Shown in pieces: positions 3,678 through 64,000 of a DNA stretch of 64,000 bases. Source of the stretch: Lepidodermella squamata. Taxonomy: Eukaryota; Animalia; Gastrotricha. The notes beneath the pieces were generated by a model. That model had not been told where the DNA came from, did no database searches, and was given only the letters and a program-made list of their open reading frames with translations. A program made the translations under genes and the position numbers. Numbering within the stretch: position 1 is the stretch's first letter; every line of letters starts with the position of its first letter. The stretch covers positions 4,588,001 to 4,652,000 of the forward strand of contig JBLDXI010000013.1 in NCBI GenBank assembly GCA_047495785.1, in the 5' to 3' direction.

Positions 3678-6600
3678 ATGGTAACTGCAGATAAATGTTG
3701 CTTTATGACTGCTAACATGCGACTTTTCATAACAGGATCTCAAAGCCTTTTCCAAAGATGATTTCGATTCAAAAACGTGGATCAATGAGTTCTTGAATGG
3801 CTTACCTACCGAGCCAGTCAGTGGAGACAAAGACGCCACACAACTAGTGTCGGCTGCAGTGATGAAACTTCAAGCAACATTCCACGAAACAGACGGCGAA
3901 ATTCAGGCCATTGCTGATGAGTTGCCACTGTTGCTGCCCAGGTAAAATGATCATTTTAATTTATGCTTGCAGCTGTTAAATTATGCATATTAGAACGCTG
4001 CAAGATCTCGAGCTACTATCAAAGGACTTGATTTTATTGAAAGATCAGATGAATACTGTGGGCAACGACGTTCGACATGTAAGTCAGATACTGTATAAGT
4101 ACTTTTCTGCGAGGAATTAATTTCTGTAATGTAAGAAGAATTAGATTCGCGCAAATTTTCGAAAAATCGCTCAAACATAAAATTGAACGAGTGGGTATAT
4201 TTCGAATGGCTGAATTGTGCCAATTTCGGCGACATCAAAGGGCGCTCGATCCAAGGCGAATTAGTTTAGTGTAAAAATAAACTAAAATAGTTGAAGCTTA
4301 TATCTGTTTAAGTTGAGTTTGCATCGTAAATTGATGCTGGCTGTTATATTTATTTGAGTCGTCACCGGTGAGTAAATTAGGAAAATAACAAAAATGCATA
4401 GGAGTAAGGGCGAGTAAAGGAAAATACAATGTATAGGGTAAAAATAGGGTTCGCTTACATCAGCATTTCAATTCGCTCGTCATCGTAAATTACATGATAG
4501 TCTACCCATCTATCAGTGATTAATGAGAATGTCACAGATTTCTCATCTTCGAAGTACGTCTCAATTCTGCGCTCTTGAAGTTCTCTAAAAGCTTTCATGA
4601 GCTATCTCGCACGAATCAGTTTCAATATCGAGAGTCTGAGGTCATCTGTAGCATTTAGCTTTTCCACTGCGAAACTAGCAGCCAATCTCTCGGAGTAATA
4701 TTCTCCGAAAGATGCCCTCATGTTCTATTTGATTAACTCGAAAGTGACCTAACAATTCTGGGGCTGAGTTCGGTTACTACGCCTGAAACTCAGTCTTTGC
4801 TGATCTCATGATCTCATCGATGTCAATCAAAATTTCATCCTCGTCCAAATCGACCGAATTCGAATCCTCAGATTTATCCAAAATATTTGTACATTGATCG
4901 GCTGGCACTGACCCGTGAGACAAGCTGGCACGAAAATCGGCAAAAAATTGTGATCGCCGAGAAGTTTGATGAATGCGTCCTCACGATGGCAGGCGTATAG
5001 GTCCAAAATGACAACACCAGGTTGCTCAGCGGGTGCTTTTCAAAACCGATCACAATAAAGCGAGAGAATATCTTCAACGTATTTCGATAAGGTTTCGGAT
5101 TTGTTCCAGTGAATCGAAGAGTGTGTGACGCTCAGATTGCTAGGATATGGCAGATTGGCATGACAGCGGTCAATGGCACCCTGGTAAATCATTTGAGGGG
5201 GCAGAACGTGGCCCGACTGCGTTGTACCCACCACCACAGTCATTTCTCGTTTGTCGTCGTAGCTGCGATGGGGACCGGCTTTGACCCGGAAAAATTACAA
5301 GTTTTATGAAAATGACCAGAACGAACTCTTGAAGCTTTAGGAAATGCGAAAATAGGAGTCCTGGTCGCTCCCATTCGCGAAAAAATTCCTCGCAGAAATT
5401 AAAACCTGAAAATAAGGCCCCTCGCAATACTTGAGTCCTCGCAGAAAATAGTACAGAATAATGAGATTTATTAAATTTAACTATTTCTGTATATCATAGG
5501 CTGAAAAACAATCGACAGAAGCTATGAAAACCTTGTTCACTCTCGAAACTATGAAACAGCGCATGATGCAAACCGAAAAAGCTCTAAAGGAAACGGACAA
5601 CTGGATCTCTCTAACTTCTGATATCGATGAATTATGCTCGGCTGGAGATTCGGAAAAGGTTGGCCTCATTTTAAACAGAATCAAGAAATCTTTAACTTTT
5701 AATTTTAGCTTTCTGACCGATTGGTTAAGCTTCACAAATGCTTGGCCCTTCTCGCGCCGGGTTTATCTGTCGAAGCCGTCACAGAGCGTCGTAACGTCCT
5801 ATCATCATTAGCCGATAAATACGAGGCAATTGTCAGCCCAGCTTTGGTGAAGGCTTTCAATGATTTAGACCGAGATACTGTCGCTAAATTTGTCGAAGTT
5901 TTCATTCTAATCGGCCGAACCGAACAGCTGCAATCGTATTACTGGCACTCCCGAGTTACAAAATACATGAGCCATTGGGATACGCTGCTGGAGCGCCACA
6001 GCTCAGCGAAATTCTGCTACGCTCTATCGGAGTTCTACGTTGATTTAACTCGAAATTGGCAGCAAGAAGTTCAGTGGTGTAGTTTGCTGTTCGACCAGCC
6101 TGCCCTGCTGTCATGCCGAGTTCTTGTAGAGCTGTCAAAAAAGCTAGAGTCGACTTTCACGTCAACGTTGGCGTCAAAAATCGAGCCAGAATCTGAATCG
6201 GCAATCGCGACTCTTATCGAATTCAAAGACGCTTGCGATAATTTCACAGAATCAGTAACAACATCAGGTTACTTGCCTCACCACTCAGATTTGCCGAAAC
6301 AGCTGTTCAAACTCGTCTACCACCCGCTGACGAGCTCTTTCGACAAATTTCAACCAGCCTTTGAGAAGCAGTTCCGCCGCACCTTGGACGCGATAATTTT
6401 AGACCACGTTGATATTGGCGAGTGTGTTCAGTTGTTAACTCGATCTGAGGAGAAGATTTTCGAGCAAGGAATTTCAGTGAAAGATAATTGCGATCGATTG
6501 CTAGACGGGTTCATCGCCCCAGTTTTCATTCCGGCGTTCGAAACGTTCTTGGTCGAGTATTTCAATGAAATCAAACGCGTGACTAGCAATTTACGTGAGC

Positions 6601-7568
6601 GAGTTTTCACGAAAATCATCACAGGTGAAACGCTATCGCCTGATCATTGGTCTGTCGTTAACAACTCGATTCAAATCGCTGTAATTGCCGGTAGTTGCTC
6701 CTTCGAATTAGCCGCAAAAGCTGGTGAATTATGCTCGGAGATCACCCCTATCCCTGACATCAATCGATCGGGTAGTACCTCGTCGGATCAGGGTGAATTG
6801 ACCCTATTCGTTGAGTGCCTTATGCAGGAATGTCCGAGATTCCGCCAGTTGTACCGAACGTTTGTAACAGCCGCGAATTCTGACGATAAAATCAAGGCAG
6901 TTTTGAATAAGGGTCTAACAGCGATTTCCGCCATGGCTAATACGATAATCACGTTTGTTCTGGATGTTTTGACAAAACCAGCGTTTTCTCAGCTGAAATC
7001 TCTGGTTTCTGGTCAAGACGAACAACAATCGCAAATTCATTCGTCGGTTTCTAGCGATCTGTTGCCCGACTATTCATTCGCTCCGAGGCATCAAATCGCC
7101 GAATTGGGGCAGTATTTATTGACTCTACCGCATCACCTCGACACATTCGGCTCGGGGAATGAGAAAAAACTAGCCGAGGCGCTACGAATTTGTTCGCATG
7201 GTTCGATAACTGTAGAAAAACAGAGAGCGTTATCGATTTCAGACCCTGATTCTTCGTTGCAAACTCAGCAAACCTCCGAGTTACTCCTCGAACCTGTGAG
7301 TCGAATGTTGGCTGACGAATTGATTCAAATTCTTCAGAAAAGCAATTATAAATGTTCGAATGCTGGCGCGGCTAAACAACTAGCGACCGATATTGATTAT
7401 TTGCTGGGCGTTTTCGATGATTTGGGCCAAATGCCGGCTGGTGCCGCGAAATTGAAGCAGCTATCCGGAATGCTACGCAGCGGATCGACTTCGCTGAATG
7501 ATCAAAGTGAACCGGTTTCGGCTGATGTTTTGAAATTGGCTAAACTGCTGTTGCCTCAAAATAACTAA
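3678..7568 (+). CDS. COG7: Conserved oligomeric Golgi complex subunit 7; exons 3678-3680, 3736-3941, 3994-4078, 5500-5658, 5709-7568
   Basis: Spliced N-terminus MDLKAFSKDDFDSKTWINEFL...SAAVMKLQ...LLPRTLQDLE, then ALKETDNW, LPDYSFAP..I..LGQYLLTLPHHLD and KQLATDIDYL..VFDDLG, all COG7 motifs. All junctions are GT-AG and phase-compatible. AATAAA at 7626. Confidence 0.92.
4888..5290 (-). mobile_element. Degenerate pogo/Tigger-type (DDE_1) transposase fragment in COG7 intron 3
   Basis: Frameshifted translation GSKPVPIA.YDDKREMTVVVGTTQSGHVLPPQMIYQG..RCH...VTHSSIHWNKSETL...GVVILDLYACHR...IFVPACLTGQCQPINV fits the pogo DDE_1 pattern. The last catalytic D (QPLDV) reads N. Confidence 0.85.
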
Positions 7569-7774: not shown

Positions 7775-10700
7775 ATGACATCTCAAGAATCGAATTTGGT
7801 GGTGATTTCGCCCAAGGAGGGTCTTTTCTTCAAATCCTTGAACACAGCCGTTCATTTCGAGCTGCGAAAAACCGTCTCCGAGCCAGTTGCGTTCAAAGTC
7901 CTGTCAAAATTCCAGAAAATCTACCGCGTCAATCCGAATGTCGGCGTAATCGAGGGCCCAGTTGACCGAACAAAATCGATTTCAGTCACGTTGAACACTG
8001 ATATTTCATCAATATCCCAGGCTGATATAACTGGCTTGGCGAACGATGTTCTCCTAATCGATATTGTCCGAGTCGATGAAGTGGCTCAGAATGGCAATCC
8101 GCCGGCGAAAAAGGCGCATAAATCCAGCCATTTTGACTGGTCAAAGGTGGAAGATAGATCGAAAGTTCAAACGCTGAAATTGAGGTCGAAATTGGACCCG
8201 TTGTTCAAAATTCAGTTGACAAATCAAATGCTAGAAATTGTCAACGCGAAGCATGCGAAATTAATGGAAGAAGCGAAAAAATCTGAAGAAATTGCGTCAA
8301 CGGAGTGTCAAACTCGGGAAAGCCAGCAAACTTCTGATCAGCATGTTCAAACGCAATCTCAAGTGATGGAAGTTGAACCTAGCCAGGAGAAGCCAGTTGA
8401 AATTTCGATTTCTGAAAATGAGCCACCTGTTGGAAATGCGACTGTTGAAATGACGATGGTTTCCGAGGCGGAGGTGGAAAATTTCCCGGAAAAAATGCCG
8501 ATGCCTGAAATTATGAATTTGCTCAAGGAAATTCGCCAAATCGAGCTCAAAGCTGAAATTGTGAGTTGAATTCATCATTTTTTTTAATTTCAGTTGAAAA
8601 AATCTTCGAAAATTCAAAATTTTAAAGTTTTGCAAAAGAATATTTAAAATGAATACCATATCAAAAAGCGGGCGAAAAGCGTTTGGTGCGAGAGTAATTG
8701 AATAGATCCAGAAGAGTGTGAGAAGAGTCTTGACCGGTACTGACCTATGGTAATCTCGTCTTTATATATGTTTGCTGTTTAGAACAATAGCAAGATGAAA
8801 AAGATGAATTACGACCCGCGTCCTTAATGAGTGGGTCGATCATTGACTCTGTCGCACCTAAGTTCAGAACAGATGAGCTAAAGAAAGATAGGAAATGAGA
8901 TATTCTTACCAAATTTTCCTTTGTAAACCTGAGTGGAATTTCGAAAAATGAAAGCTGAAAACGAGGTAAATATCAAAATCCTACTAGGCTGGGTCGATCT
9001 TCGGCGATTTCCGCAGCTTTCGGAGCGGATCGCGAGGCGGACAGTAGTGATGAGCTGGTCCTTTTGATAACTCTGCTGGTCCTTCCGTTTCATCTCCTGA
9101 TCTTTTTCGTCAAGGCTCCGCTGGAACTGGACGCAGAGTTTTACCAGCTCTTCCTTTCCTAGTTGGTTTAGGGCGCTTTCGGGCAGCAGCAGCTCCAGCA
9201 GCAGTAGCGTCGGCAGACATAAGTCAGAAAAACTTCTACGAGTAAGTGTTCAATCAAAAATGTAGAAAAAATGACCATTAAAATATCAAGTAGCCTTGAA
9301 AGACGGGCTTTCACTCGAGCTTCTCCGTTGAAGCCTGACGCACAGGTCGGCCAGCTCAGCCTTGTCCAGATCAAGCAAGACGGCTTTTGACAGTAACAGC
9401 TTACCTTTATCGGCGGACATGGTGTGCAAGGGTAGATATTATCATAATCGTCAACGATCGAGCCGTCCCCTAACTCAAAAACACAATAAGTATAAATCCC
9501 CGATTTCTGTCATTCCTGGGGGTTGCATTAGCTGTAAGTATCTAGGCATAAGTAGCAACTTTTGCAACGCACTTTATTTTGTTTATATCATTTATTTTAA
9601 GACATCGAGAATATTCGAAATTCAGCACGCTACGTTCTGTTATTTTCTGAAATTTCATTTTGGAGCGGCCAAACGCTTCAACAATTCCACGTCGCATTTG
9701 CCCTCGTCGAGCACCCTTGTAGCGTCTCTTTCGATCTGAAACGATAAAATGTGCAGTAAATAATCTCACAAACAAAAACTGAAACACAAATAAGTATAGA
9801 TCACCCGTTGCTCGAGATGTCACACAGAAATGGAAGCAGAAGTCAGAAGTCATGATTGCCAGCTGATATTGCTAGTACAGTCAATAAATTGATGAAGAAA
9901 TTTAGCACGTGTTCTGTTGTTTTTCAACTGGAACTTGATTTCGTTAGCGTCGAGGCGGCCAACCGCTTTAATAAATTGATCGTCAACGGTCGAGCCGTCC
10001 CTTAACACAAATAGGTATGTATGGATCACCAATTTCTGTCATTCTTGGGGGTTGCATTAGCTGTAAGTATCTAGGCATAAGTAGCAACTTTTGCAACGCA
10101 CTGTACTTTGAAAGACTGGCCAAAATTGCCAGAAACTGAACACACGCTAAATGGACAATTGAGCAGGACTAGCGCCGCTCGCAGTTTTTGAAGAAATCGA
10201 AATTCTGCACGCTGTCTGTTATAACTGCTTTATTTTGAGGTGGCCAGTCGCTTCAGCATCTCGACGTCGCATTTGCCCTCGTCGAGCACCCTTGTAGCGT
10301 CCCTTTCGATCTGACACGATAAAATGTGTGATAATGGCGGAAACATTTAATTGGTGCTGCTTTTTAGCACCAACGATCCACAGAGGTAATTGAGCACATG
10401 CAAGATGTAAAACAATATAGCATGCAAATATGGACGAATTGATATATTAATATGTTATATCTCATATATTTTTGAAGTATTATTAATATGTTAGGCGGAA
10501 TTTAGCTGTGGCGGAAGTTAGGGCTGGCGGGAATCATGGCGGAAATCATAGGACTGGCGCTGACAGCATTATAGCATTTCGGGATATTTTGTTTGGGACG
10601 AGGCGGCCACGATCACAAGCGCACCGCCGTCGATCTTCGTGCGGTCCAAAATCATGGTAGCATCTCGTTCGATCTGAATCGATAAATTGCGTCGGCCATG

Positions 10701-15983: not shown

Positions 15984-18900
15984 CTACCGAAGTCGATTGG
16001 AAAGTTGGTGGAATAGACAGAATTGTAATAAAATACATGTCACAAATCTAGGCGCTAACAAAACACTGCCAGAGTTCTTCCTGCTCCACTGGCCTTTCGG
16101 ACGCGGGGTTGGCTGCAAATCAATAACCCGCTCCTGAAGAGAATTACCGTTATTCGAGCCGAATTTCCCGTCAGCTTTAACATCAGGCGACGGCACCGCT
16201 GTATCCGGCACATCGACGTCTTTGTCAATATTGGCCAGTAAATTGCCTGTTGATGAAGATTCAGTCATGTCATTGCCCTGGTAGTAGTAAAAATTCGAAA
16301 ATTCCTTTTTATTATTGAGACGTCCCATTCGTTGAATGGATGGGCCGAAGCCATGGGTCCCGAATGAGCGCTCTTAGTGTCGCTTGTTGGGGTCTCTTGA
16401 GGACAGCTCGGTAGCGATTAGTGCAGTCTCGCTGACACTCCTAATCTACCACTTTTCACTTTTTGTAGCACGATGGAGTGGTCGGCCACCGTCGGGGTAG
16501 AGCGTCATTGATAAACCACGGTCGACCCGGGTGGGGATCGAACTCGTGCCCATCGATCTTGACGCTCAATACACAGCAGACAGCTATCCACTGAGCTACT
16601 GTGTACTGTGTGGTAGTAGTAGACCTCGGGCGTTTCGATTGGCAGGGTGTTTGCAAGGGAGGGAGGTATCATTGGAAACGGGCTAGAAACAGTTGGCGCA
16701 ACGAGGGGTGGAGGTAAAACAGCGTCATTTTCAGCATCTTCTTGCTGAGCTTCAGATATTATCTCCGGATCTGATAGCACATTAGTTTCTTCGATTGCCG
16801 GCGCTGGTGCAGTTGTAGTCGTCTGTGTAGTTGATGTCGAGGCGGTTGTAGTGGCCATTTTTGCGAAGTTTTCGTCGTACATGAAAATTAGGTCACGGCA
16901 TTTGATGAGAGGTTCCAGGAATGAAGTAGGCCGGATGAGTTCGAAAAGTGACAAGTCGACGCCGATTTTAAGCTCGGCCGATGTCGATTCTCGATAGCCG
17001 TTCCCAGCAATACCGTAGGAATTCGTGGATCTAGAAAATTTGGAAAATTATTTTAGAAAATTAAGATGGAGCAAGGAGATCACTCGAGGAGTGTAGTGTC
17101 TTAATTTTTCGAAATCTTAAATTAAGATAGGTATGGAAACTTGGTACAACTTGGAACTTGGTTCCAAGGTGTGGAAATTACACTTGGAGAAACTACAACT
17201 ATCGATATCGATTTCAAGAATCAGTTTTGAAAATCAGTGATTTTCTTATTGATGTGCGAAGTAGAAGCCCTAAATTAAGGGTTCCAGCTCTAATTCGAGG
17301 CTCCGGAAATTGATTTTTTTTCCAAAAAATGGTCTCTCGAGTTTTCATATTGTTTCCTTATTATTGCCAGGCCTTGCGGAGAGATCTTACTAAGACGGCT
17401 ATTTCCCACTACGAACGGTCAGTATAGGGATTATGCTGCAGAGCCGATATCGATTCCAAGTATCGATTTACTAATCAGTGATTTTTCAGTAATCAAACAT
17501 TTTGGTGGCCAATACATATTACTGAAAATGTTACTGCCGAGCTGATTGAGCCAAGTTGCTTAACTGAACAATTCGTCTAATGGGATCTTCACGGATAAGG
17601 GAGTAAACAATCCTATGGTATTGAGTATCGGTATCGATCAAGAAAATCAAAAGCACAAAATTGGAAAATGTGTTGCTAGGGCCCTTTAATTTAATGCCGG
17701 AACCTGTAAAAACTTCCTAAATTTCTATTTATTGTTTTTGAATTTTTTGAAAGCTCAGTTTACAGTTTAGATAACTGAATTAATTATTATCAAGCTTCAC
17801 ATTTTTTATATTTTTGAATAATTTTTTGGTAGATTTGAGTAAATTAACAAATTTTCTGTACGATCGAAAGATTTCAGACGAATGAATTCAAATTTTGATG
17901 ATTTTTATTCAAAAAAACAGTCACATTTCACTTACATTGCAGACGGTGCCATAAGTGAAGGTGAAAGCGGCCTCTTGCTCTGCGCATCGCCCACGTACAA
18001 AAAAGTCGCTCGATTAATCGCATCAATCGACGTCTCCAGCCTAATAAGCTGCAGCTCCTCAGTCGGCACCCGAATGCCAATCGCCAGACACCCACCAGTC
18101 GGCGACACGTCCTGCCACTCATGCAACCGCCACCGACTCGCCCTGCCACAATTTCCACCATGACTATACTCACTCAGGGTGGTCACAGCCTGGAAATTCC
18201 GAGGCCTAATACGGGCCCAATTCGTGTTGAATAAATAAGCAGCGCCGAACGGGGTCGTTGTATTCCGGCTGTTTCGATAAACCTTCGACTCAGCACTCGG
18301 GAAGGCGTTGTAGATACCCCGAACCAGCCGAAAATCTCCCCCGATTTCAACGTCATAAGTCGGAATACTACACAACGGGTCTTCGTAGTACTGGAACAAA
18401 CCTCGGAACAACGCGGCTGAAACTTCGCTGAAAATGATTTGCCGCATCAAAAACACGCCATAGGGCCGGGTTTCGCATCTTGTAGACACCCAGCGTTCGC
18501 TATTTTTGATTGTTTCATCGTACATTCTAACACTAGGCACGGGCTTGGGTCGTAGATTCGGCATAAGAAAGCTCGCATCAGGCGCCGAAATTCTCAGGTT
18601 ATTCAGCCGAGTTTCCAGTGACATTGCGCTGACGAAAAATTTCGAATAACAATTTTCTTCAATGTCATTCTGGCCCAAGGCGGCGCAGAGTGGGCACAAA
18701 TGGGCGATGAAACTCTGCGATTTGTACTGGATTAGCAGATTAGCGGCGTACATTGACGGTTTGTAGTTGAGTTCGCCGAAAATTCCTCGGAAAATTTGGC
18801 CCGTTTTCAACACGGCAATTTCGCTCCAGTTTCGATCGCCGTTATTTTCGTCAATATTTTCGTGGAAAACGCGCCGTTTGTCGACGCGCAGTAGCAGCAG

Positions 18901-20607
18901 TTCGTCGATGTTGAAGCCGGCTTTTTTCAGGCAATCGAGCCGGTCAATGTTTTTGCTGCGTTCCGCTTCGTCGACGATGCGCTGCACGGGCCGGCTGTTG
19001 ACGGGCTCCGGCGGCCAGCGGAACATGTCCGGCGTCTGGTCGATTTCGTTGTACATTTCGAACACCACCAAATTGCTGTCTGTTATACTAGCGTTTTTCG
19101 CTAGAATTGGTAATTGTTGGGCGAGATGTGGCCACAACCTAGGAAAAGAAATTCGAATTTTAAATCAAAATTATAAAAAAATTGAAAATTAATATTAAAA
19201 TTGTTCTAATTAAAATAAAATTTAATAACAAAAATGGAAATTTTACAGGTGCAAACAGGGTCAAAAGTTGGTCACGCGATCTCGCCCGATGTCACACTTG
19301 AGTGATTTTATATCGAAAACGGCTGGGAAGCCGCTTTCAAAGGAAAAGCTTGTCATCACGGTGAGATCTATTATCCCTCGGTGAACAAAATTCAGAATGA
19401 GTTTCTAAATTGTTGGGAATTTCATAATTAATTAAAAAAAATTAATATAAATAGTCGTAAAATTCCTTTTATATGCCTTTTAGACACCCTGAGGTTGTGG
19501 TCACCCTAAAAATTATTCAACTCAAATATTCAACTGAGAATGAGATGTGGAAGAAAAAATAGAAAGAATAAATAATTTAAAAAATGTTTTTTAGAATTAA
19601 TTTATAAAATTTGGAAAATAATTGTATAGTTATTTTTACCTGCCCATGTTGCATGACGGCCTAAATCTGGCCGCTTTTCGTTCCCGCCGCGTCTCCTCAT
19701 CCTCGCCGGCGTCTTCATCCTCGACCGTCACACCCTGATCATCCCCGCTCGCCATCGTTGTAGTCGGTTGGTCGAACAACACGGCCTGGGTCAGGGTTTC
19801 CTCGCCATCGACCGACGACGGGGTGACATGAAGCGGCTGTTGGATGGAAAAGACGCTGTAGTTACTCGCTAGAAATGCCGACGCGTTGAAAACGGTTATC
19901 GAAACGCGGAAGACGTTTATCTCGGCCTCTTCACCGCCAGGGGTCGACGAGAAAAATTGACGTGAGGGCGATTGGACCACTGTTATCTCACCCTAAAAAT
20001 TCGCAAAAATATCAGAAAAATTCGTGAAAAACACTTCAAATCGTCCAAACTATTTTTTTCTATTTTTTTTAATAATTTAATAAATTATTTTCCGCAGAAT
20101 TACCTCAGCGTTAAATGCGAAAATCGGTATTTTACAACCCGGATCGGCGAATTTGAAGTGTATAGACCGGAAAAACAGCCGCGATGAAATCTGATTCCAC
20201 TCACTGCCATAACTCGGGTTAGGCGGGATCGGATTTTCGTTGTCCTGTGAAGTCGTGTAAAACACATAGCGCCGGTACGTAAACTCCGGCCCAGGCGCTA
20301 TTTCACACCGCATCGACGTCCAAATGCCGTTTAGAGACGCGACGAATTTAGCTGAATCTGTGCCCGAAGCGGGTGAGGGCAGGGAGTTTGAGGCTAGAAG
20401 GGGAGAGTTGATAGCTGTGGCGCATTGCTTAGCGCTCTGGTCGTCTTTATCGGTTATTAGCGGAGCAGTAACCGGGGAGCCGACCGGGGGAACCCCGTCT
20501 CCCGAATCATCTGCGAGTGGGTTAAACTGGTATGTCCTAGTTTTTGCCTCTTCGATTAAGAAATCAGCGATTAATGCCAAAATGAATAAAAATCGTGGCG
20601 ATATCAT
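15984..20607 (-). CDS. APCDD1: APCDD1-like Wnt-inhibitor family protein; exons 20607-20104, 19992-19639, 19138-17936, 17030-15984 (last exon interrupted by a SINE)
   Basis: Signal peptide and two APCDD1 repeats (LNGIWTSMRCEIAPGPEFTYRRYVFY; WVSTRCETRPYGVFLMRQIIF...YYEDPLCSIPTY; WQDVSPTGGCLAIGIRVPTEELQL; RPTSFLEPLIKC). Phase-compatible GT-AG junctions. Confidence 0.88.
16290..16610 (-). mobile_element. tRNA-derived SINE (321 bp) with an 11-bp target-site duplication
   Basis: Minus strand has A-box TAGCTCAGTGG, B-box GAGTTCGATCC, a 3' stem-loop (CATTCG...GGCTTCGGCC...CGAATG) and an A-rich tail. TGGTAGTAGTA flanks it at 16279-16289 and 16611-16621. Confidence 0.88.
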
Positions 20608-53328: not shown

Positions 53329-54981
53329 TCAATCAAGCGATTTTTGTTCAGGAATTTTCGCCAGTAATAAAACAGGTGTTAGGAAAACGGCAACGGCGTA
53401 CGCGCAATTACTAAAATGATTGAAAGCTAATCCAGTCAAGATCCACTTTTTTCTCGCCGAAATGTCTCCCCCTGAAAAATCGCTGCCAACGATTTTGTTG
53501 TAGTAAGGAATGATTAATTTGTCGAACAGCCACGTTGCAGGTGGATCTTTCGTTTTTTCTCGCTTTTTGATTAAATAAACGACTCCGTCGCCAAAAAGGG
53601 CGAAAATTACGATGTAGGTCATCTGTTGTCAATTAAACGAAATATTCATGTGACCAGGAAATCATGGAATTAATCGCATATACCTGAAGACGGATATAGA
53701 CTGAAATGAGAGGGTGACTAGATGACTTGCTTGCCACGGGTAAATCGTCCGTAATTTTCGAATCGAATATCGAAAATGATAACAAACAAATAACAGACAC
53801 GTGAAATTTCAAATTTTTTCCCATCTATCAAATATTCAAAATTAATTTAAATCATTTTTTCCGATTCGCGACCAACCGGCGAAACCACAGCCGCGAGTTC
53901 TGCGATTGTGATGATAAAAGTTGGCAAAATGACGTTCGTTAGACCGTGCATAGGTTTCCGCCTCAGTAGCATTCGGAAATGAATTCGTCGATTAGACTTC
54001 GCATCGTCGATAATTATCAATTTAGAATAATTTCCTTCAATTCGCCAAACTTCGTTCTCGGAAAAATGGTGATCGGGCCGGTAAAATGCGAGATTGCCAG
54101 GCTGGCTAAGGTGAATTATGCTAGTTGAATCAAAGTCACTGCTGCTGATTTCAACGCTACAGATCTGAAATTTCGGGAGATTTTCAAAGAATTTCCGAAA
54201 ATTTTTACTATTTTTTCACCTGAGTATCAAACGGGAAAATAGCCAATTGAGGCTCGCAATAAACGTGAATTTCACCCATTAATTCCTTCGATATCGAACC
54301 ATCGCTACGTATCGAGGCTGATTGCCGCCTTTTGACCGGTTCATTCCAACTGTTTTGCGCGTCGAATTTCAAGTTTTTCCTTATATTAAAACAAAATTTT
54401 ACGAGGTTTAATCGATACTTCTGGAGTTCATACATGAAGAGGAATCCGTTTGTAATATTCATTTCCGGCTGCCAAATTTTAGCCGAGTTGATCGTGAAAA
54501 CATTAGTGCAGTTATACGGCCAAGTTTTATTCCACGTAAACTGATCAAAACGCCATTGCTGAAAGAATTTTTCGAGAGTTTTGAAATTTAATAAACAAAA
54601 TGAAAATACCAGCTTCATTTTCCCGTCTAACATCAAGGTACTGGTTGATTCTTTCTGTTAAAGATAATTTACAAAAAATAAATTTTTCGTGAAATTTCAG
54701 AATTAAGTAATTACGAAATTTTTTATTCCAAGAAGTTGCAGCCCCACGTAGACGTCGATATTTTTCGGTGCTTGACCAAGTTTAGCTCGGTGAAGCAAAT
54801 AGTCGAGGAGCTCGGCTTCTGAATAGGCTGGGTTAAAAGAATTTTTTTCACAAAAAATCGACAACATGTTTTACTACGAATTACAAACTGAGTCGCAGGG
54901 CAAACTTCGTGTTCTTAAGAGTTCAGAAGCCACGTAATATTGTTGAACCATCAAAATTGCCGAAAAAATTAGGCTAACCAT
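53329..54981 (-). CDS. Divergent Cys-loop ligand-gated ion channel subunit (nAChR/5-HT3-like fold, non-alpha), about 9 exons
   Basis: Signal peptide, QWRFDQFTW, KIWQPEM, Cys-loop CEPQLAIFPFDTQIC (C-x13-C), ENEVW, LRRKP, four TM segments with DDLP..S...PLI, and a very short M3-M4 loop. Confidence 0.88.
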
Positions 54982-56021: not shown

Positions 56022-57139
56022 TATTTTCACAAGTCTGAAACTTCGAATCTATTTTCGGGCAATGGTTCTGAATTTAAGTTTACATACAGAAAATAGGATG
56101 GGTCAGCCAATTTTCGATGTCTAGCGCAGGAATCTGGTTCGCAATAGGCCGGAGGCTGTTGCGAGATCCACCCAGTTAAAATCGACGATCCAATAATGCG
56201 CACATACGACGGCTCGGCGGCTTTTTTCGCCTTCTCGTCGCGATTCGCGTTCAAACCCGGCTAATTTTGATGGCACGGCTCTTGCATGTAACGAAACATC
56301 GGGCGAAGAGACGTAAAACAATGATAAACACCACCACCATACAGGCGAGTTGGAACACAAGCGACTCCCAATAAACGAGTTTGAGGTATCGAATTGGTGA
56401 GAAAAATTACTTTCAACAGGTGAAAGACGGCCTTTGGACAACGAATTCTGTCGAAAATTTAATCGATTTGTAGCATTTTTTATATTATAAGGTGGCTCAC
56501 TGTTAATACTTATCTGCAGTGATTCACATTCCTTTGGTCCGGGAAATAAGGGTACCATTCAGCGTTTCGCCGGTTACTCGAGCGAATTTCGCCCTTGTTA
56601 ACGCGCCCAGCTCGAAGGCTAAAATTTTATCCCATCGTTTTCGTTTTCGCTTCTCATAATTTTGTCAGTAATGGCCTGAAGAAGTAACCGCGCACACATC
56701 TCGCCTCATATACGTACAAAAATTATCGAAAAATTAACAACATAGACAAATAATAAGAGACTGGACACTCACGCTTATTTAATCCTGCCGAAATAAAAAA
56801 TTGCTTATTTTATCCGCATTCTAACTTTGTGTTGTAATTGCGCCTCGAGTTTTCACGATGCAGAGATAAGGTTTCACAATCTAGTGCAACTTTTTATACG
56901 CTCTATTCAATCATGTATATTTTAAAGCGGTATCGTAAAAATTTCCCCAACATTCACAGCTTTAAAAACTTCGAGAGCCTGCCTTGCAATTTGCCCTATC
57001 TCAGATTCCAGAATGGTACCAATGGGATCAATGCAGAATTTTATGAGCTTTCTTCTAAAAATCACTGATTTTATCACTGAGACTCTCGGTAGGTGACCTT
57101 CGCCCATTATATCGAATTTAAGATGGACCGATTTAGCGG

Positions 57140-57656
57140 ATTATTCCTGGAACACAGCCATGTACTAATGAATAGCCGCTGGGCTGAATGAAACATCGAC
57201 GTAGACGCTGCCTTTCGGTGGGATCTGAGCCCGGGCGGGGGAGACGTCGAAAACATCGACGATTTTCGCGGCGGCGGCTGCGGCGGCCTGGCTGTGCTTC
57301 GACGACGTAGTTTGCGTCATTGAGACGGGCCGAACTGCGATGGCGATGTCTGACGGCACTCGGCTGTTGTTTGATAGCTTGAAGCGAGCTGTCGCGCGTT
57401 TCGAGACGAGAACAGGTGGGAATACGAAGCGTTTCTCGCTCTCGCCGAACACGCCGCCGACGAACTCGGCGAGGCCCATGTGTGGCCGCAGTAGGCTCTG
57501 CCAGCCCATGATGCTTTTGATGATGGTGTGCTCTTCGAAGACAATAGGTAGTCGGAATTGTTGATGGTTGGCGCACATCCTTCGGCAACGAGGCGGTACG
57601 GAATACCGCCGGGGTTGTTGCCAGGGTCCGCGATCGGTTATCTCGATCAGCATGGT
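57140..57656 (-). pseudogene. HYDIN: Isolated HYDIN exon fragment with two compensating frameshifts and a nonsense codon
   Basis: IEITDR-DPGNNPGGIPYRLVAEGCAPTINNSD-IVFEEH...GGVFGESEKRFVF..VLV..RATARFKLSN...KIVDVFDVSP....VDVSFSP resembles an internal Hydin ASH-repeat region recalled from vertebrate Hydin. Acceptor ttacttcag| at 57657, TAG at 57167-57165, and no other Hydin exons recognised nearby. Confidence 0.75.
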
Positions 57657-58241
57657 CTGAAGTAAGAACAAAATCAACGTTCAAAGTTTACAATTAAAAT
57701 ATCATTTATTTCAATTTTCAATTATAAATTTTTGCATGTTGGAAACTTGATAGCCATTAGAGTTGATTGTCATATTATTATTCCTGCCCTAGAGATCAGA
57801 TTAATTAATTATTCCTGCAAAAAGAAGAAAATTCTTACGGCGCGGATGTATGTTATTTAACTATTGAGTAAATATTAAAAGGAGCTATGTTAACAGGAGC
57901 GAAATTATCGCCATTCTGAGCTCGAAACACGTGCTTTTATCTAGTTAAGAAGACAATTTTTACAGAAGATCATTATTCATTAATTGAATGTTTAGTAAAT
58001 ATTGAAAGGAGCCGTATGATAGGGGACGAGAAAGCTATCCCAGTTGAAAGTTCGAGAAAGTTTTATAAACATAATATTTTCGTCAGATATTTTACCAAGT
58101 TAGAGCGCTAAAAATGTAAATAGCTAACTGACATTATGCCTTCAATTCGCCGCTTGATGATTTCACACGTGAGCGAAATGTGAATTTCACGTGAAAGATA
58201 AGGAATGTTTATACAGATGCACAAGTTGAATCAATCAGGCT

Positions 58242-58248
58242 TATAAAA
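58242..58248 (+). promoter_or_regulatory. Candidate TATA box of peptide-precursor gene A, inside a promoter block shared with gene B
   Basis: ATACAGATGCA..GTTGA....GCTTATAAAA about 88 nt upstream of the ATG. A homologous ATACAGATGCA..GTTGA....GCTTATATAA precedes gene B (TATA near 62286). Confidence 0.55.
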
Positions 58249-58329
58249 TATAAAATAGGGAGGTATCGAATGCATCTTTCATTATTTCAATTTAGTATTT
58301 CTATTACTCTTAAATCGACTTCTAGCAGA

Positions 58330-58601
58330 ATGAACAAGCATTTGGTTGCAATGCTGTTTGTAGTAAGTTTAATTCGGTGATAGGCTCAAGATCTGATAAA
58401 AGAACTATGTAATTTTCTCAGGCGGCAGTAGCTGTGTGGTCAACGAGTGCTAATCCAACTGGCTCAGCTCGTCTTTCCATCGAGGAACCTTCAGCCCGTT
58501 TCTCCATGGGGGAACCCGCAGCTCGTCTCTCCATCGAGGAACCTTCAGCTCGTCTCTCGATTGAGGAGCCATCTGCCCGTTTCTCGATGGGGGAACCTTG
58601 A
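58330..58601 (+). CDS. Secreted repeat-peptide precursor A, 70 aa (exons 58330-58362, 58422-58601): MNKHLVAMLFVAAVAVWSTSANPTG-SARLSIEEP-SARFSMGEP-AARLSIEEP-SARLSIEEP-SARFSMGEP
   Basis: ATG, 59-nt GT-AG intron, signal peptide, and five 27-bp repeats whose within-type differences are mostly synonymous in this frame. AATAAA at about 58804. Confidence 0.85.
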
Positions 58602-59402
58602 GGACCGCCTGAAGACCGCCAATAGAGGACGAGCTTTAAAAAAGCGTGAGGGCAATGGTTGCGTGAAATAATGAGTCCAACATATATATGTCAATTTTCG
58701 CTTCGAAGAAACCAATGTGGGGTTTTAGCGTCAGCCATTTGCTAAAATCGTGGATTGTATAATGTTTGATGATGTTGGTTCCGATCCGAGTGAATTGTAT
58801 TTTAATAAAGTTTGTGGTGGGTATCTTGCAAAGTGAACTTCAAGTTTCCCTCGTTCAAATTTTCAGCGAAATTGTCAAAGATCGTAGAAAAGTGTGCAAA
58901 TTATTCAATCGACAAATGTCACTCCGAGATATTTTATAGTCTCCGTAGGATGCAGAACAGGAATTGATTGACGTCGTCTATTATTAAGAGATCCGTCGAA
59001 AATTCGCCATTTTCAACAACAATGGCTTTGCGTTTGCGAACATTAACGTCAAGACATATTTCAGAAAACAGATTGATTGCCATTCTGACAAGACTGCACG
59101 AGATTCGCGGCTATTAGCAATCAGAGTAATAAAGTATGCGTAATATTTTTTTGCATCGCATATTTTCAATAACTTCATAAAACCATGAGGAAATTTGTGA
59201 AGCGGTTTTCACCAGTCAATAGATCTAGTCTGCCGTAAACTTTCCTCAAATTTTTGTTAGAATGGGTTGCGAGGGAAAAATTTGATGACGAAAATGCTGT
59301 CCGCGATTTTTATTGCATGACACCGCGATTGAAGCAGATCGATTTGGTCGTGTAGATCATGGTCGTAGTTGTAGTCGTTGTCCGTCTATAGTTGTGGTGG
59401 TA

Positions 59403-61561
59403 CCCAGACGGAAATTCGCGAGACCAAATGGACGTTTTGGCCAGACCCACGGCCAAATTATTTTGACGAAGCATTTTGTCACTGATTAGGTGGAAATTTG
59501 GCGTCATGTTTTGACCAACTCCTTTTGACGAGTTTTGGCCATTGTTTCATCTAATATTTTCGCCTATAATTTATTTTCCACCTGTTGGACCTAAAGTTCT
59601 GCGAAATATTTGACTGAAACCGATATGTGATTTTTAGCCGAGGGATTCTGGCCGAAGTCAGTTTGGTCTAAAATAATTTGTCATTCAATCAACCAAGTTC
59701 CGATCCGCAATAGACTGAAGGTTTTGGCATAAATCGCTTGAATAATCACAACTAAGAATTACGCAGCTTCCTGTCTGATGAAATACAACCTGGCTTGAAT
59801 CAATCAAGGCCATAAGCAAGAGATAATTATCTTCCGTTTTTCAAGTCTTTATTATCCATTTGAAAGCTTCAGAACCTGTCTCTGTGACCTCGCCGGAATT
59901 ATTTGTTATACTCTTTGTTATTTTCTTAATAGGCATCATTCAGGTTTTTTCCGGTTCAGTTTCGGTACAAGATATTTGCGCATTGGACGACACGATAGTG
60001 ATTTTTCGAATGGAGAAATTGCATTTATTTCAGCAAGATTAACGTTGTTTCCGACCTATTTTTAAGCTGAAGAATCGCAAATCCACATTTTACGGTGGAT
60101 CTTTGATAAGGTAACCATTAACCATAAAAAACGACTGGTTGGATCTGGAGTTCTGGCATTCAACAAGCTTCACTCTTACTATTTTTAGCCGTATCAAAAT
60201 TAATTCCCGGGCTTTAATAGTTTGCGGTTTAATAATGCAATTTAACCTAAATGCTGGCTATCCTAAGAAAATCCGGATATTGATTCAAAATGATCGGGAT
60301 ATGAATTCGAAAATTATAATTTATAACCCTGATGAAGGAATCTAAGGAATAGTGATGCGGTATTTCCTAGTTTTACCTAGTAAAAGTGCCCAGAAATCTA
60401 ATCAGCAGAGCGAGGTCAAGTGCAGATCTTAAAAAAACACAGTAAAAATCAAAATAAAATAAATGAGGATGAAAAAATACGTAATGAGACACGCCCTCGT
60501 TCCACACCATTGTTATGCAACTATGAAAGCTGTGTTGCGCCACAGCTAATCTCAGCTTGTTGCATTTTACTGGTTTAGTTTTCATTTGAACTTTTTTCAA
60601 TCTCAAGAGCAAGTTATTATTTCTTTCCCTTAAACTGAAAATGAATTACAACTTGAATCATTTGTACTTTATATGAAGCGACACCGGTGGCCGGCAACCC
60701 GCCGTCAATGCGATATGGCCGGCAACCCGCCGTCAATGCGATATGGCCGGCGCTCCATTTCGACAGCGAAAATGAGGTCTTTTGTAATTTAGATTTTAAC
60801 GCCTATTAAAAGTCTCAAAACGTCAAAATATAATATGTTTTGTTCTAAATGTTTACAGGTCGAATTGACTACACCGTGATAACAGCGAGTTCAACGCCTG
60901 GCTATGGTGGCAAATTTCAAACGCCAATGAAAGGGTATTTAAATTATTAAATTGATTCAATTTAATGATTTATATTTCAATCAGAGTTCTCTAATATTTC
61001 ATATAGATCGATTGCTTGATGATGGCAACGATACTGCTACGAGTCTATTGCTGCCAAAGCGGGCTGGCTCTCTCGGCTTCAACTCGGCTATTCAACTTCT
61101 GATCGGCTCCGGGTCGGCAGCTCGAATAATTTAAAACAGATTTTTCGAGATTTTATATTCGATTTTACACGCATTTTTGTGATCATACCTAACTTGTATA
61201 ACTTGAAAATTGAATAAAACTTGGAAATAATCGTGAGTACTTGATGATTTCTGACTTAAACGACTCATAGTAAAAGGGCGACTTGAGTACAACACAGCAT
61301 TGCAGTCTAACACGGTCGAACACGGTGAGGGACTAATAAACAACATATTTTGGTCAATTTTTAACCCAGGTCGCAGTTTTGCTGAAATTCTCATCAATAT
61401 TTTGTCGAACATTTGGTCATTTCGACGACACGTTTAGCTGAAAAATTTGGCCGAGAGAATTTATGGCCAAAGTTGGGTCGACACGTTTCGTCTATTTGGG
61501 GGTATCAAATAAGATGACCAAATGAAACGGCCGAGATTTTGGTCTTATATTTCCGTCTGGG
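59403..61561. mobile_element. 2159-bp non-autonomous TIR DNA transposon (CCC...GGG termini, TA TSD; CMC/EnSpm-like)
   Basis: Left end TA-CCCAGACGGAAATTCGCGAGACCAAAT and right end TTTTGGTCTTATATTTCCGTCTGGG-TA. Repeated GACCAAAT/TTGGCC subterminal motifs at both ends. No transposase ORF. Confidence 0.75.
60689..60748. repeat. Exact 28-bp tandem duplication GGCCGGCAACCCGCCGTCAATGCGATAT
   Basis: Two adjacent copies plus a partial third. Confidence 0.85.
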
Positions 61562-62361
61562 TAGTAGTCGTGGTAGTAGTTGCCGTAGTAGTCGTCCAAG
61601 CTGAACAGGTTGTACTGATGCTAGTAGCATGAGTGGTTGTACATAGATGATTTCTGTAGTCGAAGTCGCCACCAATGGTCGCGATGTCGTGGTCGTAGTG
61701 GTCGACGTAGTGGTTTCAGCGAGGCGATAAGGAATATCTGGTTTATAATTGAGTTCCATGCTGCATTGGTCGAATTCAATCTAGTTCTATGGGTATTCTA
61801 AGCTAGTCGGAAGGTGATTTGTCTTAAGCTGCCCCCCCCCCTCTCGAGCTCGGACAGCTCCGGCCTAACTTGATTGTTATTTCTGTGTTGCGGAGGTGCC
61901 TGAAAAATTGAACAAAAGCTACCCGTCTGCCATAAAAACGCAACTTAGCGTGATGGCTCCAATTTCGGATGTCCGAAATTAGGCAACCCGCCTTGTCTGA
62001 ATTTGAGCACTGTCCGAAATTAGAGCGGAGAATTTAAGAATTTTGTAGTTTTTGTCAAAACGAAATTTTTTTATTGCAGATGATTAATTACTTGAGTAAA
62101 CATGGAAAGGGGCCGTATGATTAGTAATGTGAGAGCTATCGCGTTTTAAATTTCGAGAAATTTTTTTGCGCATAAAACTCACGTACAACCGTGAACTTCC
62201 CAACTATTTGAGCGATTGCAAAATGTAAATAGCTATAACTTAACTTTCCATGATTATACAGATGCAAATGTTGATCAGCCAAGCTTATATAAGATGGAGA
62301 AACCGAAGAAATTTTCTTTATTTCAAAAGCTTTCCCTATCATCCAATTCATATCAACTAGA

Positions 62362-63716
62362 ATGAACAAGTTTTTGGTTGCAATTCTGCTATTAGTAAGT
62401 TTCGTTAGCTGATAGGATTCAGTTGTAATGCAAAAATGACTTGATCCTCTTAGGCAACCGTATCAGTATGGACCTCGAGCGGCAACCCAACTGAGAGCCA
62501 GGACGAGGCGAGCCGCCATAATGCATTTTACCGTACTAATCCAGGATCCGGTCGTGCTGAGGATGGCCATGGTTCTGGGAGCCCTGACGAGGCGAGCCGC
62601 CATAATGCATTTTACCGTACTAATCCAGGATCCGGTCGTGCTGAGGATGGCCATGGTTCTGGGAGCCCTGACGAGGCGAGCCGCCATAATGCATTTTACC
62701 GTACTAATCCAGGATCCGGTCGTGCTGAGGATGGCCATGGGTCTGGGAGCCCTGACGAGGCGAGCCGCCATAATGCATTTTACCGTACTAATCCAGGATC
62801 CGGTCGTGCTGAGGATGGCCATGGGTCTGGGAGCCCTGACGAGGCGAGCCGCCATAATGCATTTTACCGTACTAATCCAGGATCCGGTCGTGCTGAGGAT
62901 GGCCATGGGTCTGGGAGCCCTGACGAGACGAGCCGCCATAATGCATTTTACCGTACTAATCCAGGATCCGGTCGTGCTGAGGATGGCCATGGGTCTGGGA
63001 GCCCTGACGAGGCGAGCCGCCATAATGCATTTTACCGTACTAATCCAGGATCCGGTCGTGCTGAGGATGGCCATGGGTCTGGGAGCCCTGACGAGGCGAG
63101 CCGCCATAATGCATTTTACCGTACTAATCCAGGATCCGGTCGTGCTGAGGATGGCCATGGGTCTGGGAGCCCTGACGAGACGAGCCGCCATAATGCATTT
63201 TACCGTACTAATCCAGGATCCGGTCGTGCTGAGGATGGCCATGGGTCTGGGAGCCCTGACGAGGCGAGCCGCCATAATGCATTTTACCGTACTAATCCAG
63301 GATCCGGTCGTGCTGAGGATGGCCATGGGTCTGGGAGCCCTGACGAGGCGAGCCGCCATAATGCATTTTACCGTACTAATCCAGGATCCGGTCGTGCTGA
63401 GGATGGCCATGGGTCTGGGAGCCCTGACGAGACGAGCCGCCATAATGCATTTTACCGTACTAATCCAGGATCCGGTCGTGCTGAGGATGGCCATGGGTCT
63501 GGGAGCCCTGACGAGGCGAGCCGCCATAATGCATTTTACCGTACTAATCCAGGATCCGGTCGTGCTGAGGATGGCCATGGGTCTGGGAGCCCTGACGAGG
63601 CGAGCCGCCATAATGCATTTTACCGTACTAATCCAGGATCCGGTCGTGCTGAGGATGGCCATGGGTCTGGGAGCCCTGACGAGGCGAGCCGCCATAATGC
63701 ATTTTACCGTCCTTAA
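62362..63716 (+). CDS. Secreted repeat-peptide precursor B, 431 aa (exons 62362-62394, 62454-63716): MNKFLVAILLLATVSVWTSSGNPTESQ-(DEASRHNAFYRTNPGSGRAEDGHGSGSP)x14-DEASRHNAFYRP
   Basis: Same signal-peptide exon, 59-nt intron and W-[ST]-[ST]-S-[AG]-N-P-T motif as gene A. Exon 2 is open for 420 codons to TAA at 63714-63716. Confidence 0.87.
62502..63710 (+). repeat. 84-bp coding tandem array, 14 full units plus a partial 15th
   Basis: Near-identical units. GGT/GGG synonymous variant in units 1-2, and GCG>ACG (A>T) in units 6, 9 and 12. Confidence 0.97.
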
Positions 63717-64000
63717 ATCGCAATAGGCGAATGACAAGATTGAGGATTTGCGCGATAAATAACCAGGGCCACGATATAATTATGCTACTGAAATTTCGCT
63801 TTAAAAATACCACTGTGGAAGCATGATGTCAGTTCTTGCTTATATTGTAATTTGCTTGCTACATTTATTTTACGTTTGCAGGCGCGGGTAAATTTAAAAT
63901 TTGTCTTCAATTTATAACTATTTAGCGAGTGACTCGAATATAAAATATCAACAAACAATTTGCGGTGAGTAGTGTGCATCTTCAGAAAATATATCTTCAC

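Follow-up and report, generated by a model that had tools for sequence, protein, structure and literature searches.

The window analysed here is a stretch of 64,000 nucleotides (nt) from the gastrotrich Lepidodermella squamata (contig JBLDXI010000013.1, positions 4,588,001 to 4,652,000, hereafter C13:4588001-4652000), part of a genome assembly of 121 Mb in 151 contigs with short GTAAGT..YAG introns. Towards its end lie two plus-strand genes, A and B, which combine a shared promoter, first exon and intron with different tandem repeats in the second exon. A preliminary description of the window had taken the pair for secreted precursors from which many copies of short peptides are released. Here the genes and their relatives in the same genome are described, and that proposal is weighed against a reading in which the repeat proteins act intact outside the cell.

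Gene A begins with a promoter and 5′ region at 58004..58329, delimited by an alignment of nine family copies. Exon 1 (58330..58362) consists of the 11 codons MNKHLVAMLFV, the predicted start of a signal peptide, and is followed by a phase 0 intron of 59 nt (58363..58421) of the form GTAAGTTT..TGATAGG..TTTTCTCAG, bounded by GTAAGT..CAG. Exon 2 (58422..58601) opens with AAVAVWSTSANPTGSAR, in which AAVAVWSTSA would complete the signal peptide, with a predicted cut before NPTGSAR. The array starts at 58473 and contains four full nonamers (LSIEEPSAR or FSMGEPAAR), then FSMGEP and a TGA stop at 58599-58601, giving a product of 70 amino acids (aa). The 3′ untranslated region (UTR), at 58602..58809, is 85% identical to that of the related gene D, with which it shares GTGAAATAATGAGT, and carries AATAAA at 58804-58809. 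Tandem Repeats Finder reports the array as 5.0 copies of a 27-nt unit at 77% match.

Gene B has the same layout: a promoter and 5′ region (62105..62361, from the same alignment), exon 1 with MNKFLVAILLL (62362..62394), a 59-nt intron (62395..62453), exon 2 (62454..63716) and a 3′UTR (63717..63900). Its second exon opens with ATVSVWTSSGNPTESQDEASR, that is ATVSVWTSSG and then NPTESQDEASR, ahead of an array at 62491-63710 made of 14.5 copies of the 28-aa unit HNAFYR-TNPGSGR-AEDGHGSGSPDE[A/T]SR; it ends HNAFYRP-TAA, for a product of 431 aa. The program's figure is 14.5 copies of an 84-nt unit at 99% match. The two-exon structure with an 11-codon first exon and a 59-nt intron, as first proposed for both genes, was confirmed in its coordinates and its GTAAGT..YAG sites, and so were the Pro-stop ending directly after a core in A and B and the small-small-Arg motif ahead of each core (SAR or AAR in A, ASR or TSR before HNAFYR in B). 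Gene B is indeed misframed in the list of open reading frames (ORFs), where ORF 62521..63726 is offset by 67 nt from the exon start at 62454.

The pattern formed by exon 1 and the splice donor occurs twice in the window, against 0.00 expected, and nine times in the whole genome, against none in the reversed control. The genome-wide listing by this pattern, suggested in the preliminary description, thus yielded nine copies on two contigs: A, B, C (4697092, minus strand) and D (4706873, minus strand) on C13, and A2, B2, C2, D2 and E (242714) on a second contig, C74. Two different cassettes used as DNA queries recovered the same nine loci. The start of C74 is collinear with the end of C13, which terminates ~20 kb beyond D; flanking coding DNA is 98-99% identical between the two, and non-coding flanks are 88-96% identical. 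Both forms are also present at similar depth in a single DNA run (X1), including a 7-nt deletion typical of A2. Because the contigs are collinear and near-identical and both forms occur in one DNA run, C13 and C74 represent two overlapping haplotypes. The overlap extends over C13:~4565000-4727703 and C74:1-~150000, and genes within it are counted twice in the assembly. Per haploid genome the family numbers five (A to E) within about 170 kb, and nine copies are assembled. A search of C13:4652001-4658000, just beyond the window, for further members found no cassette, only a co-duplicated upstream fragment that is described below.

Alignment of the nine copies places the upstream blocks previously noted in A and B where they had been reported: GAAAGG.GCCGTATGAT at 58004-58020 (A) and 62105-62121 (B), AAAATGTAAATAGCTA at 58111-58126 and 62220-62235, ATACAGATGCA..GTTGA at 58211-58229 and 62256-62274, and a TATA box that reads TATAAAA in A (58242-58248) and TATATAAG in B (62285-62292). 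A further block, the perfect palindrome TTTCACGTGAAA (58180-58196 in gene A), has a CACGTG E-box core; it precedes the ATG of A, C, D and E by ~140 nt and is missing from both B and B2. A second E-box (CAGATG) lies inside the ATACAGATGCA block. When two of the promoter motifs were searched for in the whole genome, only the family loci and one chance match were found. TTCTAG/CAG directly before the ATG of gene A is a possible trans-splice acceptor.

The first ~25 nt of the intron (GTAAGTTT..TT.G.TGATAGG) are kept in all nine copies, beyond most of the promoter. This conservation may reflect gene conversion, or it may mark a regulatory or splicing element. In an unspliced transcript the conserved TGATAG would close two frames and, because the array of D has no in-frame ATG either, that array would be translatable only through exon 1 and the splice. 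Eight of the nine aligned copies retain the promoter, the splice sites and the signal-peptide sequence.

Genes A, C, D and E carry a short leader followed by pure nonamers of the form [L/F]-x-[I/V/L/M]-x-E-P-[S/T]-A-R. The number of full nonamers on C13 and C74 respectively is 4 and 13 in A, 3 and 6 in C, and 28 and 45 in D; E, which was not assembled on C13, has 8 on C74. Repeat number differs between the haplotypes in every gene compared (A, B, C and D). The final unit is cut off after Pro in A, D and E, while C ends in a 22-residue tail that closes with GGR (..KGGR). Across 107 units, L fills position 1 in 100 and F in 7; only I, V, L or M occurs at position 3 and only polar or small residues at positions 2 and 4; and position 5 is E in 102. 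Pro6, Ala8 and Arg9 are invariant in all 107, even though they are spelled with several codons (CCT/CCC/CCA, GCC/GCT/GCA and CGT/AGG), and 32 distinct 27-nt units encode only 13 peptides. The ratio of synonymous to non-synonymous codon differences is 1385:1357 in the nonamer frame, compared with 223:2529 and 26:2575 in the other two. Since the synonymous excess is confined to the frame reached by splicing from the signal exon, that frame is under protein-level constraint. Unit types frequently alternate, giving an 18-residue super-repeat, yet the alternation is not strict and is broken by runs such as hh and ii.

The cassette is conserved to a different degree from the payload. Mean identity between paralogues, for the five genes, is 84% in exon 1, 72% in the intron (shuffled, 49%), 71% in the leader and 63% in the core promoter, but 59% in the mature region over all pairs; the 3′UTR averages 54% and is conserved within subgroups only, as in the 85% between A and D. 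In the mature region B matches the others at 50%, which is the shuffled level. The claim that the payloads of A and B are unrelated holds for the arrays but seems to fail for the stretch before the array in B. Both this stretch and the mature end of B2, ..E-A-S-(A)-R, seem by their residues to be what is left, after divergence, of the nonamer end E-P-S-A-R. Given that remnant, the small-small-Arg motif common to A and B would be partly inherited rather than independently acquired.

B and B2 occupy the same position on the two haplotypes. They are 100% identical in exon 1, 95% in the intron and 81% in the 3′UTR, but only 46% in the payload; both the payload and the promoter upstream of the TATA box are at random level. 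B2 (C74:77205 onward) encodes only 41 aa, with a mature part of 20 residues, EFATEVSEASARRLAASGGW, and no array, and it lacks all the promoter blocks upstream of the TATA box. Its RR is the sole dibasic pair in the family. B2 may be a decaying allele, or it may be a small-peptide gene under different regulation. The pre-array stretch TE..EAS(A)R is common to B and B2, and the end of B2 resembles, at the DNA level, one diverged copy of the RHNAF.. segment. Most likely, to judge from these resemblances, the B array was amplified recently from a single-copy sequence, and the source looks like a diverged nonamer end in which E-P-S-A-R had become E-A-S-R.

By classic sequence rules the family products would carry an N-terminal signal peptide and hence be secreted. 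All copies have an n-region MNK (or MSK, MNN), a 14-residue hydrophobic core with a mean Kyte-Doolittle hydropathy of 2.1-2.9, and, ahead of N-P, a small-x-small c-region (S-T-S-A, S-S-G or W-S-A). Mature products are acidic (isoelectric point 4.7-6.4), Cys-free and, except for C and C2, Lys-free, with Ser plus Thr making up ~12-18% of residues. The arrays contain no Lys, no dibasic pair and no R-x-x-R; a single Arg closes every unit, so that in the nonamers Arg stands at P1 and P10 only, with no basic residue at P4, P6 or P8. In B the Arg of TNPGSGR has another Arg at P8, the sole such site in that gene. Gly precedes Arg in B (TNPGS-G-R) and in the last residues of C (..KG-G-R), where it is a possible amidation signal, and is absent from all 107 nonamers.

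Searches for relatives returned nothing that resembles the whole gene. In a word-indexed search of 5.8 billion proteins, exon 2 of B had no match and exon 2 of A2 a single low-complexity match, nothing real. Exhaustive phmmer with the gene copy C2 gave 164 matches, among them an RNF213-like protein of amphioxus, a FERM/4.1 protein, a CBS-domain protein and an ORF from a Lacrimia transcript; all of them belonged to unrelated proteins with nonamer or low-complexity repeats, from diverse organisms and contexts, and the leader and tail went unmatched. Two metagenome loci were rejected as chance matches, being on contigs of 51% GC and not in an open frame. The strings HNAFYR, SIEEPSAR, LAVGEPSAR and TNPGSGR were in no paper found by literature search, and an ESM Atlas feature search scored 0.85 or below, a low recognition. 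The conclusion of the preliminary description that the family is undescribed was upheld: no known neuropeptide or other family was matched in the protein, metagenome and literature searches. The exon of the neighbouring gene COG7 also found no match at E ≤ 1e-20, so the lineage looks poorly sampled and missing orthologues are weak evidence.

Profile searches gave two apparent family assignments. The Pfam family DUF6470 scores 39-79 bits on C2, D and E (cut-off 28.9), but only over profile positions 1-65 of 178, and Glyco_hydr_30_2 reaches E 3.8e-21 on B through 13 stacked weak stretches. Membership of either was rejected as repeat-inflated, an unrelated FERM/4.1 protein also scoring 77 bits on DUF6470. 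A six-frame family scan of the own genome had no match to DUF6470.

AlphaFold2 models mature D confidently (predicted local distance difference test score, pLDDT, 89.4; predicted template modelling score, pTM, 0.85) as a β-solenoid with one strand of 3-4 residues per unit. The closest solved fold is the Ca2+-dependent β-helical antifreeze protein 3p4g (Z 20.4, root-mean-square deviation 2.9 Å over 247 residues). A Foldseek search had no match at E ≤ 0.001. For the array of B, which is more perfect than that of D, the pLDDT is only 60, so confidence is not automatic for repeats here.

The reading that we tentatively prefer, at somewhat short of an even chance, is that these genes encode secreted repeat proteins which evolve fast and work uncut in the extracellular space, in whichever physical state. 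Every gene combines a private promoter of ~350 bp, with fixed blocks and a TATA box, an 11-codon exon for the start of the predicted signal peptide, a phase 0 intron of 58-62 nt, and a second exon that completes the signal peptide (..VW-S/T-S-A, predicted cut before N-P) and then encodes tandem repeats only. The nonapeptide [L/F]-x-[I/V/L/M]-x-E-P-[S/T]-A-R would be the ancestral payload, replaced in B by the very recently amplified 28-residue unit, and arrays would turn over by unequal recombination or slippage, quickly enough for genes to differ between the haplotypes, while signal exon and intron stay nearly identical. The acidic, Cys-free and mostly Lys-free products would then form either an extended, possibly O-glycosylated coat or a β-solenoid-like rod, polymorphic in length in the manner of mucin-like or surface and effector proteins; we regard an extended mucin-like state and a true solenoid as equally likely. 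The hydrophobic-polar-hydrophobic-polar start of each unit and its invariant Pro turn give it a strand-and-turn signature, for which a cleavage model has no need. Several results weigh on the other side. Of 78 random perfect repeats, 32 have been reported to be folded by AlphaFold2 into confident but unrealistic β-solenoids (PMC11795689). An ESM Atlas shape search brought up solenoid-like models also for the lubricin (PRG4), trophinin and per-hexamer repeat clusters; the repeat region of lubricin is disordered. Alleles of A and C with 3-5 units would not be long enough to form a stable solenoid as monomers. The invariant stretch E-P-S-A-R then L coincides with P5 to P1′ of a would-be cleavage site; the same SAR closes the leader, the final unit breaks off directly behind its Pro, and the Gly-Arg of B and of the C tail might signal amidation. 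Finally, a search of sequencing runs with a 5.8-kb query matched no RNA run, only the DNA-like run X1, although so long a query may mask small transcripts. The specific proposal that the intact proteins fold as uncapped β-solenoid or β-roll rods with 18 residues per coil, which on the model could be stabilised by Ca2+ or joined end to end into fibres and could serve as ice-binding, adhesive or fibre proteins, is unlikely in our judgement. It would account for the confident D model and its Z score against 3p4g, for the strand and Pro turn, for the 18-residue super-repeat and for the scores of C2, D and E with DUF6470, a bacterial family of nonamer repeats; it has to contend with the solenoid bias of AlphaFold2, the empty Foldseek search, the lack of caps and of any GGxGxD-type Ca2+ motif, an alternation that is not strict and the 3-5-unit alleles.

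If the products are instead polyproteins, a trypsin-like or unusual convertase would cut after every invariant Arg, between P-S-A-R and L, and trimming that stops at Pro would release dozens of peptides of 6-9 residues (LSIEEP, LAVGEP, FSMGEP, LELNEP) with signal or defence roles, together with HNAFY(R) and TNPGS-amide from B. This is the main rival, a serious possibility though a doubtful one. Conservation falls exactly on P5 to P1′ while positions 2-4 vary, the leader NPTGSAR closes with the same site, A, D and E stop directly after the Pro of the last core, and x-Ala-Arg is a good trypsin-type site; B adds an acidic spacer and, following TNPGS, a Gly-Arg whose P8 is Arg, C adds its ..KGGR end and B2 its RR pair. 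Against these stand the absence of Lys and of dibasic or R-x-x-R sites from every array and a nonamer Arg spacing of 9 that leaves P4, P6 and P8 without a basic residue, whereas monobasic convertase sites as a rule have a basic residue at one of these positions. The products would be short acidic peptides, neither amidated nor cyclised, and cleavage does not require a hydrophobic position 3 between polar positions 2 and 4. Chance could well account for the stop after Pro6, since TCA, the codon that follows, is one of only three in the unit that a single change turns into a stop. An array present in 14.5 copies on one haplotype and missing from the other is unexpected for a conserved signalling peptide, and neither relatives nor described peptides were matched. 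No protease, oxidase or tailoring gene was found nearby among Pfam matches in ORFs of at least 110 aa at 44-62 kb and at least 200 aa window-wide, a search that spliced genes may escape. In a more particular form, a cassette peptide system, a fixed module of promoter, signal exon and intron would carry arrays that a dedicated non-dibasic protease cuts, with whole payloads swapped or amplified between haplotypes; we think this rather unlikely. If true, it would provide a fast-evolving repertoire of hypervariable hexa- to nonapeptides for signalling or defence, unlike any described animal prohormone. The original proposal of a secreted multi-core precursor thus survives in part: the genes are secreted-looking orphans with a fixed cassette and exchangeable payloads, but canonical prohormone sites are absent.

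A quite improbable alternative is that the genes are decaying or neutral, minisatellite-bearing relics whose arrays drift freely, with B and B2 in particular non-functional. The short B2, stripped of the blocks upstream of its TATA box, would suit such a view, as would the recovery of X1 as the only matching run, and the array of B is 99% identical and so offers no test of selection. Yet frames stay open over up to 439 codons, the synonymous excess appears in the predicted frame only, and eight of the nine copies keep promoter, splice sites and signal peptide. Between intact repeat proteins and a polyprotein, the invariant E-P-S-A-R then L junction can be read either as a new non-dibasic processing site or as a β-turn.

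Other features accompany the family. A GC-rich segment at 57059..57719, 0.6-1.3 kb upstream of A, was found by DNA search of the own genome to be co-duplicated with the genes: the equivalent position upstream of C holds a copy that is 90% identical, that upstream of D a partial copy at 78%, and a weaker copy is at C13:4653441-4653970. Its minus-strand ORF at 57165-57677 has a weak Ig-like match only (to the fourth domain of CFAP65) and may be a captured exon fragment travelling with the duplication unit of the family. A partner gene in this segment was considered and rejected, as its ORFs on the minus strand resemble a weak Ig-like fragment or an Arg-rich frame that does not look like protein. 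Between A and B, a 2.17-kb insertion of repetitive or mobile DNA (59388..61559) is present on this haplotype only; it is missing from C74, and a contig of run X1 joins 59387 to 61560. Segments of the block recur at 83-100% identity on contigs C2 and C50, and a nested mobile-element insertion is its probable origin. It includes, at 60688-60751, 2.3 perfect tandem copies of a 28-nt sequence (TGGCCGGCAACCCGCCGTCAATGCGATA). Neighbouring genes include an exon of a Cys-loop ligand-gated channel (54208-54636, minus strand), COG7 as one 615-aa exon, and, by Pfam, an MSP-domain (VAP-like) protein, an APCDD1-like protein and an FHOD fragment; the remaining neighbour-gene coordinates are 5721-7568, 7775-8569 and 17932-19137.

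If the genes are expressed, their secretion cassette is held constant while the payload is replaced within a single population, B and B2 being 95-100% identical in exon 1 and intron with unrelated payloads. The family also offers a concrete case on which to learn how peptide polyproteins and structural repeat proteins can be distinguished, and it is a caution for structure prediction, Pfam scoring and automated annotation on perfect repeats; it has no bearing on a long-standing open question.

Among peptide precursors, the fungal KEPs and dikaritin-type precursors resemble these genes, with their predicted signal peptide, in placing a long series of short, almost identical cores behind the signal, with a basic residue at each boundary. 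That group is defined by dibasic Kex2 sites (KR/RR; PMC6339444, PMC7329392). Here such sites are lacking, the gene is an animal one with an intron, and there is no adjoining DUF3328-type or tailoring gene. The KEP or dikaritin architecture suggested in the preliminary description was accordingly dropped, as A, B, D and E have no Lys and RR occurs in B2 only. Neuropeptide and antimicrobial precursors of the FMRFamide, cnidarian RFamide and apidaecin types resemble the family in its predicted signal peptide and its repeats, and B in its Gly-Arg and acidic spacers; they differ in that the arrays here have no dibasic sites, the nonamers no amidation Gly, and the spacers are not of the EAEP/RR type of apidaecins. 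A further difference is that copy number here ranges from 0 to 14.5 between haplotypes, and no orthologue was found in a lineage that is poorly sampled. Taken on their residues, the products would answer to the description of a prohormone only in part.

Structural repeat proteins offer partial likenesses as well. Mucin-like and lubricin-like proteins with variable number tandem repeats have short Pro/Ser/Glu-rich repeats, wide allelic length variation and solenoid models; here Ser plus Thr is only ~12-18%, positions and not just composition are conserved, and there are no flanking globular domains. RTX β-rolls and the Marinomonas protein 3p4g share the nine-residue periodicity and the single short strand per unit seen in the D model, but the GGxGxDxUx consensus is absent, the gene is eukaryotic and the model is a prediction only. 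DUF6470, which is bacterial and, in a 14-genome control search, was found in Bacillus subtilis only, has a similar h-x-h-x-x-P-x-A-x pattern, although only the repeat part of its profile is matched here.

The gene-level pattern appears closest, by analogy, to the 'unusual conservation' of the small secreted salivary gland protein (SSSGP) clusters of the Hessian fly, in which promoter, 5′UTR, signal-peptide region, intron and in part the 3′UTR are conserved while the mature region is at random level (PMC2955719). The SSSGP families are also species-specific, with no detectable relatives (PMC2955719). The likeness lies in clustered paralogues whose cassette is better conserved than the mature region (exon 1 84%, mature region 59%) and goes no further than analogy: the sequences are not similar, and the L. 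squamata payload, purely a tandem array, evolves through turnover or replacement of repeats rather than through point substitution. The repeat unit is new and the replacement of a payload at the level of haplotypes striking, but the family is of a known kind, that of fast-evolving secreted repeat or effector-like families with a conserved cassette.

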